Assembly (NCBI GenBank): GCA_965603825.1
Contig: CBFDEM010000017.1
Span: forward strand, 186,001 to 250,000
Reading direction: 5' to 3'
DNA length: 64,000 nucleotides
Origin: Blepharisma stoltei ATCC 30299
Taxonomy: Eukaryota > Protista > Ciliophora
In this document: positions 7,357-14,025 of the stretch, piece after piece
Position numbering within the stretch: the stretch's first letter is position 1
Layout: every line of letters begins with the position of its first letter
Position numbers and translations under genes: made by a program
Notes under the pieces: model-generated
What the model was told of the DNA's origin: nothing
Database searches by the model: none
What the model saw: the letters and a program-made list of their open reading frames with translations, nothing else

Positions 7357-8790
<1,434 letters not shown>

Positions 8791-9047
8791 TTACAATAAA
8801 TTTTTTGATCATTATTTGTATGAATTAATTGAAATTAGTTGCGTTATAATATTTAAGTAAAATATATACAAAGACTCGGTACAAAAAATCGAATAAGTGG
8901 GAGCGCTTCGAATAAAAACAGAACAAGTTCTGTGAAAAACTAGAAGAGTTCGGACAGCACAAGGGGTAAATGACTACGATAGTGGGCGCTCGAACTAATT
9001 TAATATATAACATATAATAAAGACTACATAATTAAAAAGGTGAAAAC

Positions 9048-9517
9048 ATGCGACGTGAACCGAAATCAGTAAACAAAAATACATTTCCATTGAGAGCATA
9101 TTTAAAAGTGGAAAGAGAGCACATAAAAAAATTACACAGTCTAATAGAAACTCATCATGTTCCACCACACAAAATAGCATCCATACTTATGTTGATTCTA
9201 GAAGATATACCTTTATTGAGCAAATTAGACATGATGAGGGATAGTATGAGACAGCTTGCTCAAGAATATAAAATAAGTGATTATTGTGAGCATCTCAGAA
9301 GTGTTTATGATTTATATTGTTGCATTTATGCACTACCTGAAATAGGCTGTAGATATGGCATCAATGATCATCACTTATATCGTACAGTGGACAATAGGAT
9401 GGATGGACCATGGGTTAACAATGAACCTTACTAGATACGAACTTTTTAAATGTTATCACTGAACACATACGTGAGGATATCAGGACGCAAATAGCTGAAT
9501 ATGAGGCTCTGAATTAA
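9048..9517 (+). pseudogene. Bacterial-type hypothetical gene, frameshifted and apparently cut by the IS256 element
   Basis: SD-like AAGGTG at 9037-9042 precedes the ATG. The 128-aa ORF continues after a frameshift as LDTNFLNVITEHIREDIRTQIAEYEALN, whose TAA lies inside the putative IS left end. Confidence 0.45.
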
Positions 9518-9567
9518 TTTCTGAAATAGGTTATATTAATAATAATAATAATTTATAAGGAAATAGC

Positions 9568-10098
9568 ATGAGTAAGATTAATCAAGAAAAAATAAAACAG
9601 CAGCAGATTTGCTAATAGACAAAGATACTGATTTTTTCAGATTTTTGCTAAAGATGGAATGTTAAAACAACTAAACAAGAATCTATTTGAAAGAGCATTA
9701 AAAGCTGAAATGGAGGAGAATCTAGATTATAGCAAATATAGCAGAGCGGAAACAGAAAATAGTAGGAATGATGTAGGAAAAAAGAGTTTAATTACCGAAG
9801 GCAGCGTATTAGACCTTGAAGTACCCCGCATGCTGAGTTTACTCCTGCATTAGTACCAAAGCGTCAGACTAGAATTGATGGACTAGATCAGAAGACATTA
9901 TCATTGTACACTAAGGGAATAAGTCTATCTGATATTAAAATCCAGATCCACGAACTATACGGTGCAAAAATTAGTGAAAGCATAATCAACAGAGTTACGG
10001 ATAATGCAATGGATAATGCAATGGATAAAGTAAGGAGTTGGCAGAATAGACCTTTAGAAGCAATTTATACTATCGTTTATTTTGATGCTTTAGTAGTT
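9568..10098 (+). pseudogene. IS256 transposase pseudogene
   Basis: At least three frameshifts (~9599, ~9635, ~9828), an in-frame 12-bp tandem duplication, and loss of similarity just after the first catalytic Asp (YFDALVV). Confidence 0.88.
9999..10028 (+). repeat. 12-bp tandem duplication (GGATAATGCAAT x2.5) inside the transposase
   Basis: Directly visible; gives DNAMDNAMDK. Confidence 0.9.
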
Positions 10099-11826
10099 AG
10101 GGAATTAGCAACATTTATGTAGGAATGTGGCATAAGGCTGTAGCTGAGTAAATATATGGCTTTCATAGGCTAGTTTTTTCGATTTCTTCTAAAATCTTTC
10201 CATAAAAAAATTTTCAATAATTACTCTGCAAAGCTGCCTAAGTCACAATTTTAACTTTCTGTAAAAAAAATTTTTATTGTAAGTATAAATTTTTGGATAA
10301 AAAATATCAAATTTTGTTATTTTTCATGTAGCCTACAGCTGTGTTTTTGTATGTTTTATCTATTTTTACCGCTAAACTTTTTATAAAATAATTTTACCTT
10401 CTGATGAGACTTTTATTAATTATACGAGTGATTTCTTTGGCTTGCCAATAAACAATACATAAGCAATGCTAGGCAATAACAGCAGTTTCGTTGTATTATT
10501 AAATCTCTAGTTGTGACACTACCTCTATTCCCATATCCAACAGAAGCTGATATTTTGCAAATGGACAAGAAGATAAACTTTTTCACCTCTTTCTCCAATT
10601 TGGTATTTTGCTATTTTCTCGCAGATAATGTTTTGGAATTTGAAAAGCATCGCAATAGAATAGCCGCCATTCTTTCAACTTCCTTCTAGAGTTTCCTTTA
10701 TTTTTCCATTTATTCCTATAACTGCTGCAATAATCGCACAAATTTCGCATGTATAGACGAGTTAAGTTTATATCTGGGTTGTTTCCTTGAATTTAAAAGT
10801 CATCCATCTCGCCGGTTATTATGTATGCTTCTATATCTTCTTCATCTATAGATTCTAATGCCATGAAAAGGCAAGAGTTTCTTTCTCAACGCTTCCGTGT
10901 TCAGACCCACGATAGCAATTTAGGATTACGGCTTGAAAGCCATCAAGAAACTCTTTGGTGTTTTCTGTAACCTTTCACTACCTTGTGCGTGCATTGCGAG
11001 CTATTTTCTCTTGGAAAAGTTTGTTTAATGAGATTTCAACTTGAAATGGTTCATGATTATTCTTTAGGTTGAAAATATCGACTGTCTGAATGAAGTTGGC
11101 TTTTTGTAAGGGTCTTCTTGTTTTGCTATGAGTATTAGGCTTGATATTTTTACCATTTATAATATAATAAATTCAAATCCCCCTTTAATTTAAAGATATG
11201 ACATTATGCTATTTTAAGGTTCAATTATTTTATAATCAATAGCTGAAAGTATTTTATAAAATCCTTTATCTGATTTTATTTTTAGATTTAGTATCTACAA
11301 ATAATCCTTTTAAATCTTTCTTTTATCTAATATGACTGTAAGTTGGCTAGATTCTTAAGTTTTTAAGCTTAATATTTATTTGCCTGGTGAGATTATTTAA
11401 TTAAATATAATATTGGTTACCAATTATGAAAATAATAAAATTTATACTCTACTTTCTGCTAAAATTTGCTTATTCTTGTATGAGATATAATAAATTTTAT
11501 TATTTTTATTCAGTTTTATTTATTAGTGCCATTAAATTAATGACTTTATTAAATAAAGTGTCTAAACTTCTTTAAATTAAATCCTTCAATAGCAATGAAA
11601 GATTTATTTTAGAAAATCTAATTATATGTCTTATGCCCAGATTTTAAGATATATCCCAATTCGCAACGAAAATTCAGGTGTATTATATGATAAGGGCTAT
11701 TAAAAAATAATCTAAAATCAGTTAAAATTTCCTTGATTAAGCTTAAGCTTCGTCATTTATAAAAGCCAGTATAATCAATGAACTGGAATTCTCAATAAAT
11801 CTTACAAAATATCTAAGAATAATAAA

Positions 11827-14025
11827 ATGGGTACATGCACTGCCAAGCAAGATGCAGTTGCCTCAAAAAAGCCTGCCCATATTAGAGTCCCTGACTTTGA
11901 TTACCTGAACCGTTCAAAAAAATTACTGTGCCACGTGACACCTGAATCAATTGAAAAGCATCAGTTCAAGTCAAAAATCAAAATCCGAGCCGATTCCACA
12001 GTCGGCTATATTTCTAATGACAGAATGATAGTGGTTGGGGGCAGTGATAGCTCAGGAATGTTTACAAATAATGCTTGCATTATAGATAGCAAAAGTAAAA
12101 AAGCGACCGTAATTGCTAGGCTTCCGATTTCTGCCAAAGAAGGGGTATTATTGGAGTATAATGAATGGATTTTTTATGTTGGAGCGGTCATACAAGATGA
12201 AGAATCCTTGATAGGAGTTTCAGGCGCTTCAGTGATGAGGTATAATGTTAATGAAAATTATTGGGAAATATTTTTAGATGAAGCAAATAAAGGGCATGAA
12301 GAAAATCCAATATCCAAAGAATTTAAATTGAAAGATTTGCTATATCCTGGGTGCTTTATGATTAATTCAAAAATTTATTTTGTTGGGGGGCAAAGAATCA
12401 ACACAAAAGGAAAGCTGAGGTCTAGCAAAAAAGTGTTCACATTGGATTGCAAGTCATTGAAAGTAAAAAAAGAAGAAATTAGGTTGCCAATTAAAGTTGT
12501 TAACCCGATTTGTGCTTCTGGCTCTGGGCATGCTATTATTGCTGGAGGTGATAACCCAAAAACCCAAAAACATAGCCTATATTGCTATTTATTTTCCCTC
12601 GACCCACGACCAGAATTCAAACCTATGGAGGTTATAGGGTTTTCATTGACAGAACATTATCCAGCTATTTATATACCAGGAAAAGGGCCAATCTTTATAA
12701 ACTACCCAGGAGTAGCATTTAAAGAAAAACATACAGCTAATTGGCATCATTTGGATTTTGCTAAAATTTCTCCAGATATAGAAGACCAAAATTTTAGCCA
12801 CCACAAATATGAAGTTGAAAAATTACCATCTGGTGAAGCTCATGAAACAGTCATGAATTTATCTGTTGAAATAGACATTTTAGCGAAATTAAAGAAAAAA
12901 GAGAAATTAAATGATGAGAAAGCGAAAACGCCAAAAAATGAAGAAAGTAAAGTCACTAAGGAACAAAGTGAAAAGGAAGAAATAGGAATTAAAAATAAAT
13001 CCTCAAGTATTAGTAATTCAAGCTCATCAGATAAAGAAGGGAAAGAATCTAAAGAAATATCTAAAGAAAAAACTGTAATAAATGCTGATGCTTCAAAAAG
13101 AGATGCCAAAGAAATAAAAATATCAAGTGAAGGCTCTAGTTCTTCAGACGAAAGTAATGTAAAGCGGAAAATAGAAATCAAACTTAACAAAAAAGTCCCA
13201 ACAATTATACATTCTCCAAAAGTTGATATAAAGACCAAAAGCAAAAAGCAGATAAGTGAATCTTCTGATGAAGAAAATTTTAGAGTATCTGCTCCAAAAA
13301 TTGAGAATTCTAAAGTAGAGCCAAAGCTAACGCTAAAGCTTCCAAAGCAAAGAAAGTCTTCTAGCAGTGACTATTCATCTGATATAGAAACTGGAAAAGC
13401 TGGCTTGAAGCCTAAAATACAAGCAAAAACTCATCTTCCTAAAATTGAAGCCAAAGCTAATGTCAAAAAGGGAAAAAATAAATTTTCCAATAGCAGTTCA
13501 TCTGAAGAGCCTAAAGGAGAAGTTTATGAGGAAGATAAAATCAGCAAAAAATCCTTGGTTATCAATGCCGAAACTCCTAAGGAAGAGCATAAAATTGTGC
13601 TAAAGCTCCCAAGACAAAGAAAATCTTCAAGCAGTGACTACTCATCTGACATAGAAACTGGCAAGCCTGGCTTGAAACCTAAAATTCAATCAAAAACAGC
13701 AACTCCAAAAGTTAATGCCAAAATCAAAAATAAAAGATCTTCAAGTAGCAGCTCATTAGAAGAATTAAGAGGAAAAGCAGAAACAGAAATCCCTGGAATC
13801 AAAGCAAGCAAAACTCCAGTTTTTAAAGCTGATATTAAAGCTTCTGAATCCAAAAATAAAAAGAAATCAAGCAGTAGCTCAAGTGAAAATAGCAGTAGTG
13901 AGAGAAAAATAGGGATTTCACTAAAAGGGTCAAAAATGAAAGCTAATGAAGAAGAGGCTGGAGAAAAAGGAGAAAATAAATTGAATGTGAAAGGAGGAAA
14001 AATCAAAGGAAAAGTAAAACTTTAA
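11827..14025 (+). CDS. Kelch-like beta-propeller protein with Ser/Lys/Glu-rich repetitive tail; N-terminal MGTC acylation motif
   Basis: Kelch-like blades (IVVGG, IFYVG, IYFVGG, IIAGG) in the first ~310 aa, then a low-complexity tail with an internal repeat. Confidence 0.75.
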   Translation: MGTCTAKQDAVASKKPAHIRVPDFDYLNRSKKLLCHVTPESIEKHQFKSKIKIRADSTVGYISNDRMIVVGGSDSSGMFTNNACIIDSKSKKATVIARLPISAKEGVLLEYNEWIFYVGAVIQDEESLIGVSGASVMRYNVNENYWEIFLDEANKGHEENPISKEFKLKDLLYPGCFMINSKIYFVGGQRINTKGKLRSSKKVFTLDCKSLKVKKEEIRLPIKVVNPICASGSGHAIIAGGDNPKTQKHSLYCYLFSLDPRPEFKPMEVIGFSLTEHYPAIYIPGKGPIFINYPGVAFKEKHTANWHHLDFAKISPDIEDQNFSHHKYEVEKLPSGEAHETVMNLSVEIDILAKLKKKEKLNDEKAKTPKNEESKVTKEQSEKEEIGIKNKSSSISNSSSSDKEGKESKEISKEKTVINADASKRDAKEIKISSEGSSSSDESNVKRKIEIKLNKKVPTIIHSPKVDIKTKSKKQISESSDEENFRVSAPKIENSKVEPKLTLKLPKQRKSSSSDYSSDIETGKAGLKPKIQAKTHLPKIEAKANVKKGKNKFSNSSSSEEPKGEVYEEDKISKKSLVINAETPKEEHKIVLKLPRQRKSSSSDYSSDIETGKPGLKPKIQSKTATPKVNAKIKNKRSSSSSSLEELRGKAETEIPGIKASKTPVFKADIKASESKNKKKSSSSSSENSSSERKIGISLKGSKMKANEEEAGEKGENKLNVKGGKIKGKVKL
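13333..13689 (+). repeat. Intragenic duplication of ~90 bp (13333-13422 and 13600-13689)
   Basis: LKLPKQRKSSSSDYSSDIETGKAGLKPKIQ versus LKLPRQRKSSSSDYSSDIETGKPGLKPKIQ, 267 nt apart, with mostly synonymous differences. Confidence 0.85.

Follow-up and report, generated by a model that had tools for sequence, protein, structure and literature searches.

A truncated Rickettsiales-type IS256 fragment within a partly excised germline unit of the ciliate Blepharisma stoltei

Wolbachia inserts exist in arthropods and nematodes, and the locus described here resembles these nuclear integrations in that passive, decaying bacterial DNA has become fixed in a host chromosome. Bacterial insertion sequences (ISs) are very rare in eukaryotic nuclear genomes. 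The few prokaryotic IS relics described there are the IS5-like one of Adineta vaga and IS607-like sequences (PMC3673617), and no IS256 type was found in a survey of 430 eukaryote genomes (PMC3673617). Compared with these earlier relics, the present one belongs to the IS256 family, its host, a ciliate, keeps a germline genome apart from the somatic one, and it is located within IES-type DNA.

The surroundings of the relic are best compared with ciliate elements. Tec, TBE, and BstTc1 elements have TA/TATA flanks (a TATA duplication in BstTc1 [PMC9942856]), CAGT-type tips, and long terminal inverted repeats (TIRs) and are excised as IESs, all of which we also found for the 7.6-kb germline unit that contains the relic. 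The unit is also like the partially excised IESs of Blepharisma (PMC9942856), which are stretches of germline DNA that bear the hallmarks of transposons and are removed only in places; here, in contrast, bacterial DNA is present in the part that is retained, and the MAC of a second strain is without the whole unit. Partial excision has been conjectured to occur where foreign DNA has no good excisase sites (PMC9942856). The assemblies and strains used below were identified from PMC9942806 and PMC9942856, neither of which mentions this locus.

We analyzed 64,000 nucleotides of B. stoltei ATCC 30299 (assembly GCA_965603825.1, contig CBFDEM010000017.1, positions 186,001 to 250,000), hereafter called the window, whose numbering is used throughout. 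The reading that we favor, with a probability of about 0.7, is that Rickettsiaceae-like DNA entered the germline of ATCC 30299, lies inside a 7.6-kb, partly excised unit, and is now decaying.

The IS256-family fragment

A truncated and frameshifted IS256-family fragment of Rickettsiales type occupies 9516..10099 on the plus strand, as seen with PF00872, blastn, and tblastn. It comprises the inner part of the left IS end, a relic of the RBS (9556-9561), an ATG at 9568, and codons ∼1 to 180 of a transposase of ∼400 aa, that is, the N-terminal 45% of the gene and its upstream leader. When stop-free pieces were compared with Pfam, PF00872 (Transposase_mut) matched the pieces 9632-9850 (profile positions 20 to 82 of 379, E value of 3e-10) and 9820-10119 (positions 87 to 170 of 379, E value of 2e-18), and tblastn of full-length transposases against the window covered residues 7 to 180 alone. 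The homology stops at about residue 180 of ∼400, immediately past the YFDA motif. The second and third catalytic residues are missing, which leaves the DDE catalytic domain incomplete; neither the window nor the germline locus yielded a tblastn match to the missing half of the transposase, and the right IS end is absent.

The fragment is 82% identical to the bacterial copy L045 over 571 nt, and the alignment with this copy revealed a 12-nt tandem duplication at ∼9999-10022. The transposase frame is broken, as had been noticed previously, by three frameshifting deletions, of 1 nt near 9598 and near 9640 and of 7 nt near 9828. Thus, the transposase assignment made in an earlier note, which was based on the letters of the DNA and their open reading frames, holds for two pieces of the gene, but the "clear IS256 element" of that note does not, given that 45% of the gene is present and no right end: the locus holds an IS fragment, not an intact element. 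The same note had placed a left inverted repeat at 9503. The IS of the closest bacterial copies starts 23 nt upstream of the point where homology begins in the window (9516), and we found that 9493-9515 is identical to the 23-nt IS tip at only 8 positions. Since the left tip is unrecognizable, it cannot be demonstrated that an IS inserted at 9516, and the proposal that the IS had inserted into the upstream gene while still within a bacterium could not be upheld. The motifs TAAGGA before ATG 9568 and AAGGTG before ATG 9048 are both present as described, and the AGGA upstream of ATG 9568 is kept in bacterial IS copies.

The fragment is like the IS256 copies of Rickettsiales in its transposase N terminus, leader, and RBS, and its lesions are like those of their many degraded copies. 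It differs from them in that it resides in a eukaryotic nuclear genome, has neither the tips of the inverted repeats nor the right half, is immobile, and is single copy in the 41.5-Mb MAC genome of B. stoltei ATCC 30299. With its outer left tip and its right half gone, and little of the catalytic domain left, the fragment would have arrived as passive DNA and not by transposition, and the relic is presumably functionless.

Extent of the transferred DNA

A transfer of ∼0.6 kb is certain and one of ∼1.06 kb is probable. The longer piece would consist of an orphan gene at 9048-9434 and the adjoining first 45% of an IS256-family IS at 9516-10099, perhaps to 10157. The 10100..10157 stretch (plus strand) may be a degraded, collinear continuation of the IS fragment; its gapped alignment with the next 60 to 80 nt of L045 or L033 beats 95 to 99.8% of shuffles, a marginal result. 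When 8791-11820 was compared by blastn with five Rickettsiales genomes, similarity to bacterial DNA was limited to 9516-10099. No Pfam match was obtained for 10100-11800 or for the stop-free pieces of the IESs, and Rfam and tRNA scans were empty.

The orphan gene, ORF128, is a 128-codon open reading frame on the plus strand (9048..9434) that was found by an ORF scan and has Rickettsiales-like composition. With a small Markov classifier, for which the Rickettsiales training set was 35 kb of DNA from IS-flanking regions, ORF128 scored in the middle of the Rickettsiales distribution at k values of 3, 4, and 5, and only 0 to 1.2% of host windows scored equally high. The IS fragment was Rickettsiales-like in composition as well, and 10100-10424 was host-like. 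Judged by its composition, ORF128 probably belongs to the transferred bacterial DNA.

An unlikely but serious alternative confines the bacterial DNA to the 584-bp IS fragment; the remainder of 8869-9515, ORF128 included, would then be germline or "junk" DNA of the ciliate or, for the ORF, a product of chance. Indeed, ORF128 had no homologue in 5.8e9 proteins (word-index search) or in 1.84e9 representatives (full HMMER search), nor in Pfam, the ESM Atlas, or the five Rickettsiales genomes; its sole match, a plant P450, was discarded as a repeat-inflated artifact. In addition, the foreign DNA may really begin at 9516, since the left IS tip is unrecognizable, and an ORF of 130 codons is no extreme case in AT-rich DNA. 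Against this alternative stand the composition of ORF128, at a level that host windows rarely reach, the Shine-Dalgarno-like AAGGTG (9037-9042) 5 nt ahead of its ATG at 9048, and the absence of in-frame TGA from it, whereas ORFs of the neighboring IES read TGA as sense. We retain ORF128 as a probable part of the bacterial DNA.

We do not extend the bacterial DNA further to the left. The stretch 8869..9047 contains only ORFs of <30 aa, and its composition is ambiguous, with a Markov log-likelihood ratio near zero. The earlier note had seen a stop-riddled coding remnant at 8870-9008 and had started a bacterial island at 8850; we found no support for either, and a germline IES junction lies at 8864-8868. 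To the right, the AT-rich filler at 10158..10542 is host-like in composition.

The germline unit and its absence from the MAC of a second strain

In the somatic genome, the relic lies between two host genes. The upstream one (3' part, 7453..8790, plus strand) encodes a Ser/Thr protein kinase (Pfam Pkinase, E value of 2.5e-52), uses TGA for Trp in an HPWF motif at 8143, and ends with TAA at 8788-8790. It had previously been called an AMPK gene; the protein kinase domain was verified, and AMPK is a putative identity. The downstream gene (ATG 11827) is of Kelch type.

Comparison with L053, a record of the MAC+IES assembly, in which the IES sequences derive from error-prone long reads (PMC9942856), revealed that the germline locus differs from the window by inserts alone, of 4,050, 100, 290, 838, and 319 bp, and that short direct repeats mark their TA-containing junctions. 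The germline locus corresponds to 255,300-263,000 of contig 17 in that assembly. The 4,050-bp IES (junction 8864..8868) contains a left long TIR and 3.3 kb of internal sequence, and the 838-bp IES (11205..11213) contains the right long TIR. Between them are the 100-bp IES (10422..10424), seen in L053 and in a contig of the independent run X7, and the 290-bp IES (10752-10755). The 319-bp IES (11814..11816), just upstream of ATG 11827, is MITE-like with C-rich TIRs, and its family has been described (PMC9942856).

Together, these sequences form a 7.6-kb unit with TA/TATA flanks and TIRs of ∼0.8 kb that has the bacterial block in its interior, which would be the integration point. The inverted arms (L053:764-1529 versus 7661-8403) are ∼95% identical and exactly so over the outer 18 nt; their tips, CAGTTTTAGAGAGACG, begin with CAGT as in Tc1/mariner elements and do not match the repeats published for BstTc1 and Bogo (PMC9942856). 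The interior of the unit is pieced together from scraps of ciliate-coded genes, a nested MITE, and a copied host ORF. The last is a degraded copy, on the minus strand (10543..11207), of a Blepharisma orphan ORF; it is 94% identical to intact 224-codon copies at two other places in the genome, C23 and C58, and is broken in the germline by the 290-bp IES. The products of the C23 and C58 paralogues contain TGA codons. When the reference strain builds its MAC, both repeats, 3.3 kb of the interior, and the two small internal IESs are excised and a 2.3-kb core (8869-11204) is retained, and the relic in this core thus reaches the somatic genome.

Contigs from the Illumina run X12, which represents a diverged second strain, HT-IV, join 8856 to 11205 through TAGTAAAATATA (12 nt). 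Three TA units are present at this junction versus five in the reference, where they are split over both flanks. As X12 joins the outer ends precisely, the MAC of its strain is without the whole 7.6-kb unit. The earlier proposal that the block escaped elimination thus gained support, both from this precise empty junction in another strain and from the germline IESs that flank the block within a TIR-bounded unit.

From its repeats and flanks, the unit resembles a non-autonomous Tc1/mariner-style element with long TIRs. Unlike Tec, TBE, and BstTc1, it has bacterial DNA in a patchwork interior and no DDE transposase: no stop-free ORF of at least 70 aa in the IES parts of the unit gave any Pfam match, and the genes called in the germline locus are without precomputed Pfam matches. 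We regard as improbable the alternative that the long inverted repeats are an inverted duplication made upon integration, or two unrelated IESs, and that X12 reflects a deletion or alternative excision boundaries. The lack of a transposase inside the unit weakens the transposon-end reading, as do tip matches that are not above chance in the MAC genome and the single complete unit seen. However, the repeats terminate exactly at the X12 junction, with a TA/TATA duplication and CAGT tips. Furthermore, the X7 contig of the C23/C58 paralogue has a loose end at 11207 and continues into sequence resembling the right repeat at its inner end, a hint of other copies of the unit. If the unit is a long-TIR element, the bacterial DNA could have landed in it or ridden on it, and genome editing could differ by strain, with the unit wholly missing from the soma of one and its ends alone removed in the other; we offer this scenario as tentative.

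A dead 1-kb relic alone would be a minor curiosity. Its value lies in the setting: the relic is in partly disposable germline DNA, the deletion boundaries are base exact, and an interfertile strain provides the clean alternative. The locus opens questions about partial elimination of foreign DNA that has no good excisase sites, its marking by small RNAs, and epigenetic inheritance of retention. If the tentative scenario of bacterial DNA in a long-TIR element is true, the locus would offer a natural test of whether and how DNA elimination in ciliates recognizes new foreign DNA or misses it, and IES or transposon DNA could be a landing pad or vehicle for symbiont-to-host transfer.

Retention of the core might also be explained if ORF128 were a functional, expressed, and domesticated bacterial gene, which we consider very unlikely. 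Its 128-codon frame is intact, and probable RNA runs yielded low-depth contigs over 9108-9519, but their depth is 5 to 7 versus 35 for the neighboring kinase gene, and carry-over of DNA is possible; the locus may be weakly transcribed. The structure model of ORF128 is poor (pLDDT, 0.57), no ciliate-style features were shown for it, and the locus is missing from the MAC of another strain.

The bacterial block is truly integrated in the ciliate chromosome. A 2,074-nt contig of X7 runs from the 4,050-bp IES (253 nt of it, joined to 8864) through 8864-10424 and the 100-nt IES to 10422-10581 with 0 differences, which confirms two of the five L053 inserts. The block was found in runs from three studies, all of the same strain. 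Ciliate cultures contain bacteria, and X12 has a separate, related IS256 contig at high depth, but an assembly chimera or contamination, in which bacterial reads were misjoined to a ciliate contig, is extremely unlikely and was rejected, since the X7 unitig is unbroken through both IS-fragment boundaries, 97 to 99% of the words of 8600-10600 recur in seven DNA runs of two studies, contigs from probable RNA runs cross 10099, and the fragment is doubly truncated, frameshifted, and situated between IESs.

Bacterial affinity and possible donor

The nearest relatives of the fragment come from endosymbionts, as IS256 copies of Rickettsia, "Ca. Tisiphia," "Ca. Anadelfobacter," and "Ca. Lariskella," to which it is 76 to 82% identical in nucleotides and about 77 to 80% in amino acids, with similarity that includes the noncoding leader and the RBS. 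In the tree, it lies inside a clade of endosymbiont IS256 copies with support of 100/100. Blastn identities to Rickettsiales loci were 76 to 79%; in GTDB genomes, the best matches were in Rickettsia endosymbionts (77 to 79%) and "Ca. Anadelfobacter" (75%), and 80% was reached in 3 of 401 Rickettsiales genomes. The named protein relatives are from "Ca. Tisiphia," R. bellii, and "Ca. Lariskella."

PF00872 is related to the MULE family. An origin as a relic of a ciliate Mutator/MULE element has next to no plausibility and was rejected, for although MULE-type genes exist in Blepharisma (PMC9942806), the bacterial IS copies are closer (77 to 82% amino acid and ∼80% nucleotide identity, leader and RBS included), and the one other PF00872 match of the genome, the Mutator-like gene C45, is without BLAST similarity to the IS256 transposases of the fragment's clade. 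The bacterial origin asserted in the earlier note is therefore sustained.

No donor match exceeded ∼82% in GTDB genomes, the 401 Rickettsiales genomes, metagenomes, or Logan/ENA proteins. Third codon positions account for 66 to 69% of the differences, a share that matches bacterium-to-bacterium pairs, which suggests that most of the divergence is older than the transfer. At the family level, these similarities point to a Rickettsiaceae-like intracellular bacterium as the probable donor. We found no paper linking Rickettsiales to Blepharisma, and no such symbiont is on record; the locus is further evidence that B. stoltei or its ancestors were hosts to Rickettsiales-type bacteria. The related IS256 contig in the X12 run has a depth of 412 versus ∼225 for the MAC, and it may mark a living, donor-like bacterium in the culture of the second strain.

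Relatives of the IS256 transposase fragment

The bacterial relic lies within the 3 kb that separate a 732-codon gene starting at 11827 from the protein kinase gene upstream of it (Pkinase, E 2.5e-52), which ends at 8790 and reads TGA as Trp (e.g., "HPWF" at 8143). Three-frame translation revealed the N terminus of an IS256-type transposase split across three frame changes, and two stop-free pieces matched Pfam Transposase_mut (PF00872, profile length 379), at 9632-9850 (profile 20-82, E 3e-10) and 9820-10119 (profile 87-170, E 2e-18). When full-length Rickettsiales transposases were aligned, only their residues 7-180 could be placed, the remaining part being found neither in the window nor in the corresponding germline locus. 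Compared with the closest bacterial copy (L045; 82% identity over 571 nt), the fragment lacks 1 nt near 9598, another near 9640, and 7 nt near 9828, and it carries a tandem duplication of 12 nt near 9999-10022. The earlier note had rightly recognized a frameshifted IS256 transposase, but what it called a clear one is the N-terminal part alone. The fragment is single-copy in the macronuclear (MAC) genome of Blepharisma stoltei ATCC 30299 (G000; 41.46 Mb in 64 contigs), where the only other PF00872 match lies on contig C45 (G000:C45:459153-459494, minus strand; locus L004), in an open frame of 490 codons, two of them TGA. That gene shows no BLAST similarity to these Rickettsiales transposases and is presumably one of Blepharisma's reported domesticated Mutator-like genes.

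We then looked into the bacterial relatives. Among species-representative genomes, the best matches were Rickettsia endosymbionts of insects (77-79% amino acid identity), as the earlier note had expected of intracellular bacteria, and "Ca. Anadelfobacter sociabilis" (75%), followed by Spiroplasma (59%) and Bacteroidota/Ignavibacteriota (~40-44%). An identity of 80% was attained in 3/401 Rickettsiales genomes, and metagenomes yielded no relative closer than 78-82%. Named protein matches include Ca. Tisiphia, Rickettsia bellii, the Rickettsia endosymbiont of Argas persicus, and Ca. Lariskella. In a tree of a 91-residue piece, the fragment fell within a clade of endosymbiont copies supported at 100/100, with unresolved inner branching. 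The similarity to bacterial copies reaches the noncoding leader and its AGGA ribosome-binding motif. Judging from these comparisons, the IS fragment is bacterial DNA and no relative of the eukaryotic Mutator/MULE elements that the note had named as the alternative. Third codon positions take 66-69% of the differences to the nearest copies, compared to 65-74% between bacterial copies. The 20% divergence therefore accumulated mostly before transfer, in bacteria in which the gene still worked. An unsampled relative is the donor, and decay after transfer is modest. As an illustration of the IS load possible in such donors, the 3.2-Mb genome of the Rickettsia endosymbiont of Urophora cardui (G002) contains >150 copies of a related IS256 that share 64% identity with the piece in the window; a 407-codon frame is intact in many of them.

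Extent and integration of the probable bacterial island

Rickettsiales similarity detected by blastn was restricted to 9516-10099. The left end of the IS in the closest copies lies 23 nt upstream of the point where homology starts, and 9493-9515 matches their left tip at only 8/23 positions, which is chance level and leaves the left inverted repeat previously proposed at 9503 without a counterpart. On the right side, a collinear gapped alignment to ~10157 is possible and beats 95-99.8% of shuffles, so the IS tail may extend that far. On both sides, therefore, the piece breaks off within the IS, and it did not transpose to its present site.

ORF128 (9048-9431), an orphan 128-codon ORF upstream, had no homologue in the protein databases and Rickettsiales genomes searched, a single HMMER match being dismissed as a repeat artefact. 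We used a strand-symmetric Markov classifier, a small model with 35 kb of Rickettsiales DNA (IS homologues masked) and 105 kb of Blepharisma DNA as training sets, which scored >0 for ~82-92% of held-out Rickettsiales windows of 384-647 bp versus 3-9% of Blepharisma windows. The ORF128 region (9048-9515) scored mid-Rickettsiales, with ≤1.2% of host windows as high (k = 3, 4, 5), and the IS fragment was likewise Rickettsiales-like; 8869-9047 was ambiguous and 10100-10424 host-like. On composition alone, ORF128 is probably bacterial in origin. From the classifier scores and the blastn extent, we took the bacterial island to be, probably, about 9040-10099(-10157); nothing in our analysis supports a further coding remnant proposed at 8870-9008.

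Sampled words of 8600-10600 were present at 97-99% in seven DNA runs from two studies and at about half in four runs, probably of RNA, from another study. An unbroken 2,074-nt contig from a reference-strain run (X7) comprises 253 nt of germline-only sequence, 8864-10424, a 100-nt germline-only insert, and 10422-10581, with 0 differences to the window. It crosses both IS boundaries and excludes an assembly chimera for practical purposes, the junction evidence coming from one strain.

A transposon-like germline unit around the relic

The germline record GCA_914767885.1 (L053; MAC+IES assembly, PMC9942856) contains ORF128 and is identical to the window save for five inserted segments, which are IESs, segments excised during MAC development: 4,050 bp at 8864-8868, 100 bp at 10422-10424, 290 bp at 10752-10755, 838 bp at 11205-11213, and 319 bp at 11814-11816. 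Error-prone reads underlie the IES sequences of this assembly. In reverse complement, the 838-bp IES matches the initial ~770 bp of the 4,050-bp IES at ~95%, and the outermost 18 nt of both long repeats are exact (TACAGTTTTAGAGAGACG). This match makes L053:767-8400 one 7.6-kb unit with terminal inverted repeats of ~0.8 kb each. ORFs in its IES parts are ciliate-coded, as they have TGA as a sense codon; a domain search of these ORFs found no transposase domain, and the repeat tip had no matches above chance in the MAC genome. The unit is transposon-like and IES-rich.

Ciliate-coded scraps with TGA as sense and with what look by eye like PHD-finger and BAH-type motifs lie at L053:2901-3427 (minus strand) in the 4,050-bp segment, which also nests a ~150-bp palindrome, a C-rich inverted repeat, at L053:1780-1930. 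The 319-bp IES (L053:9013-9331; ends CTCCCCCCTCCGTGAGTGAAC) is C-rich and directly precedes the ATG of the next gene. Both C-rich inverted-repeat insertions resemble Blepharisma's described C-rich MITE-type IESs. At 10543-11207 (minus strand) lies a degraded copy of a Blepharisma orphan ORF, 94% identical to intact copies (224 codons, TGA as Trp) at G000:C23:110457-111131 and G000:C58:416285-416953. The 290-bp IES interrupts its coding sequence at ~residue 136, and an X7 contig suggests that the C23 and C58 paralogues also have an IES there. These two lie within a 3.56-kb segmental duplication (99.8% identical), the MAC-retained interior of which holds most of a 934-codon ORF, SET-domain-like by eye; tblastn found no similarity between this ORF and the L053:2901-3427 scraps.

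Strain context and significance

A second run, X12, has the same organism label and flanks ~1-4% different from the window; most likely it corresponds to the Illumina run of HT-IV in PMC9942806. In its contigs, 8856 is followed by TAGTAAAATATA and then directly by 11205, a junction falling exactly where the two long repeats have their outer edges, and 8869-11204 has zero coverage. Three TA units are present at this junction versus five in the reference, where they are split over two flanks; a target duplication of TA or TATA would be expected to give this pattern. The unit was either never inserted in this strain or excised whole; total DNA fits both. A separate 1,042-nt X12 contig (depth 412 versus ~225 for MAC contigs) matches 9833-9905 at 86% and retains the "DRN" codons deleted in the window. 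The X12 culture therefore contains a related IS256 with less damage, possibly a multicopy IS of a bacterium that inhabits or accompanies the culture.

The locus holds Rickettsiaceae-type DNA that became fixed in the germline, within this unit, as a passive relic and is now decaying. The reference strain removes the ends of the unit and some of its interior while keeping the core, and only for this reason is the relic seen in the soma. The symbiont-to-host transfer escaping elimination that the earlier note had put forward holds for a bacterial relic in the chromosome, kept in the MAC with the core of the unit, but not for an intact IS256 element, the piece being cut inside the IS. The authors of PMC9942856 conjectured that excision may be incomplete for foreign DNA without good excisase sites, and this locus, unmentioned in both Blepharisma papers (PMC9942806 and PMC9942856), is a concrete candidate. 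Prokaryotic IS relics are rare in eukaryotes, a survey of 430 eukaryote genomes having found IS607 types only (PMC3673617). The present locus stands out for having its context in the germline and between strains worked out.

Probable RNA-seq runs of a time course crossing ATCC with HT-IV yielded contigs over 9108-9519, 9703-10243, and 10227-10581, with depths of 5-12 versus 35 for the kinase gene; these contigs could reflect weak transcription or DNA carry-over.
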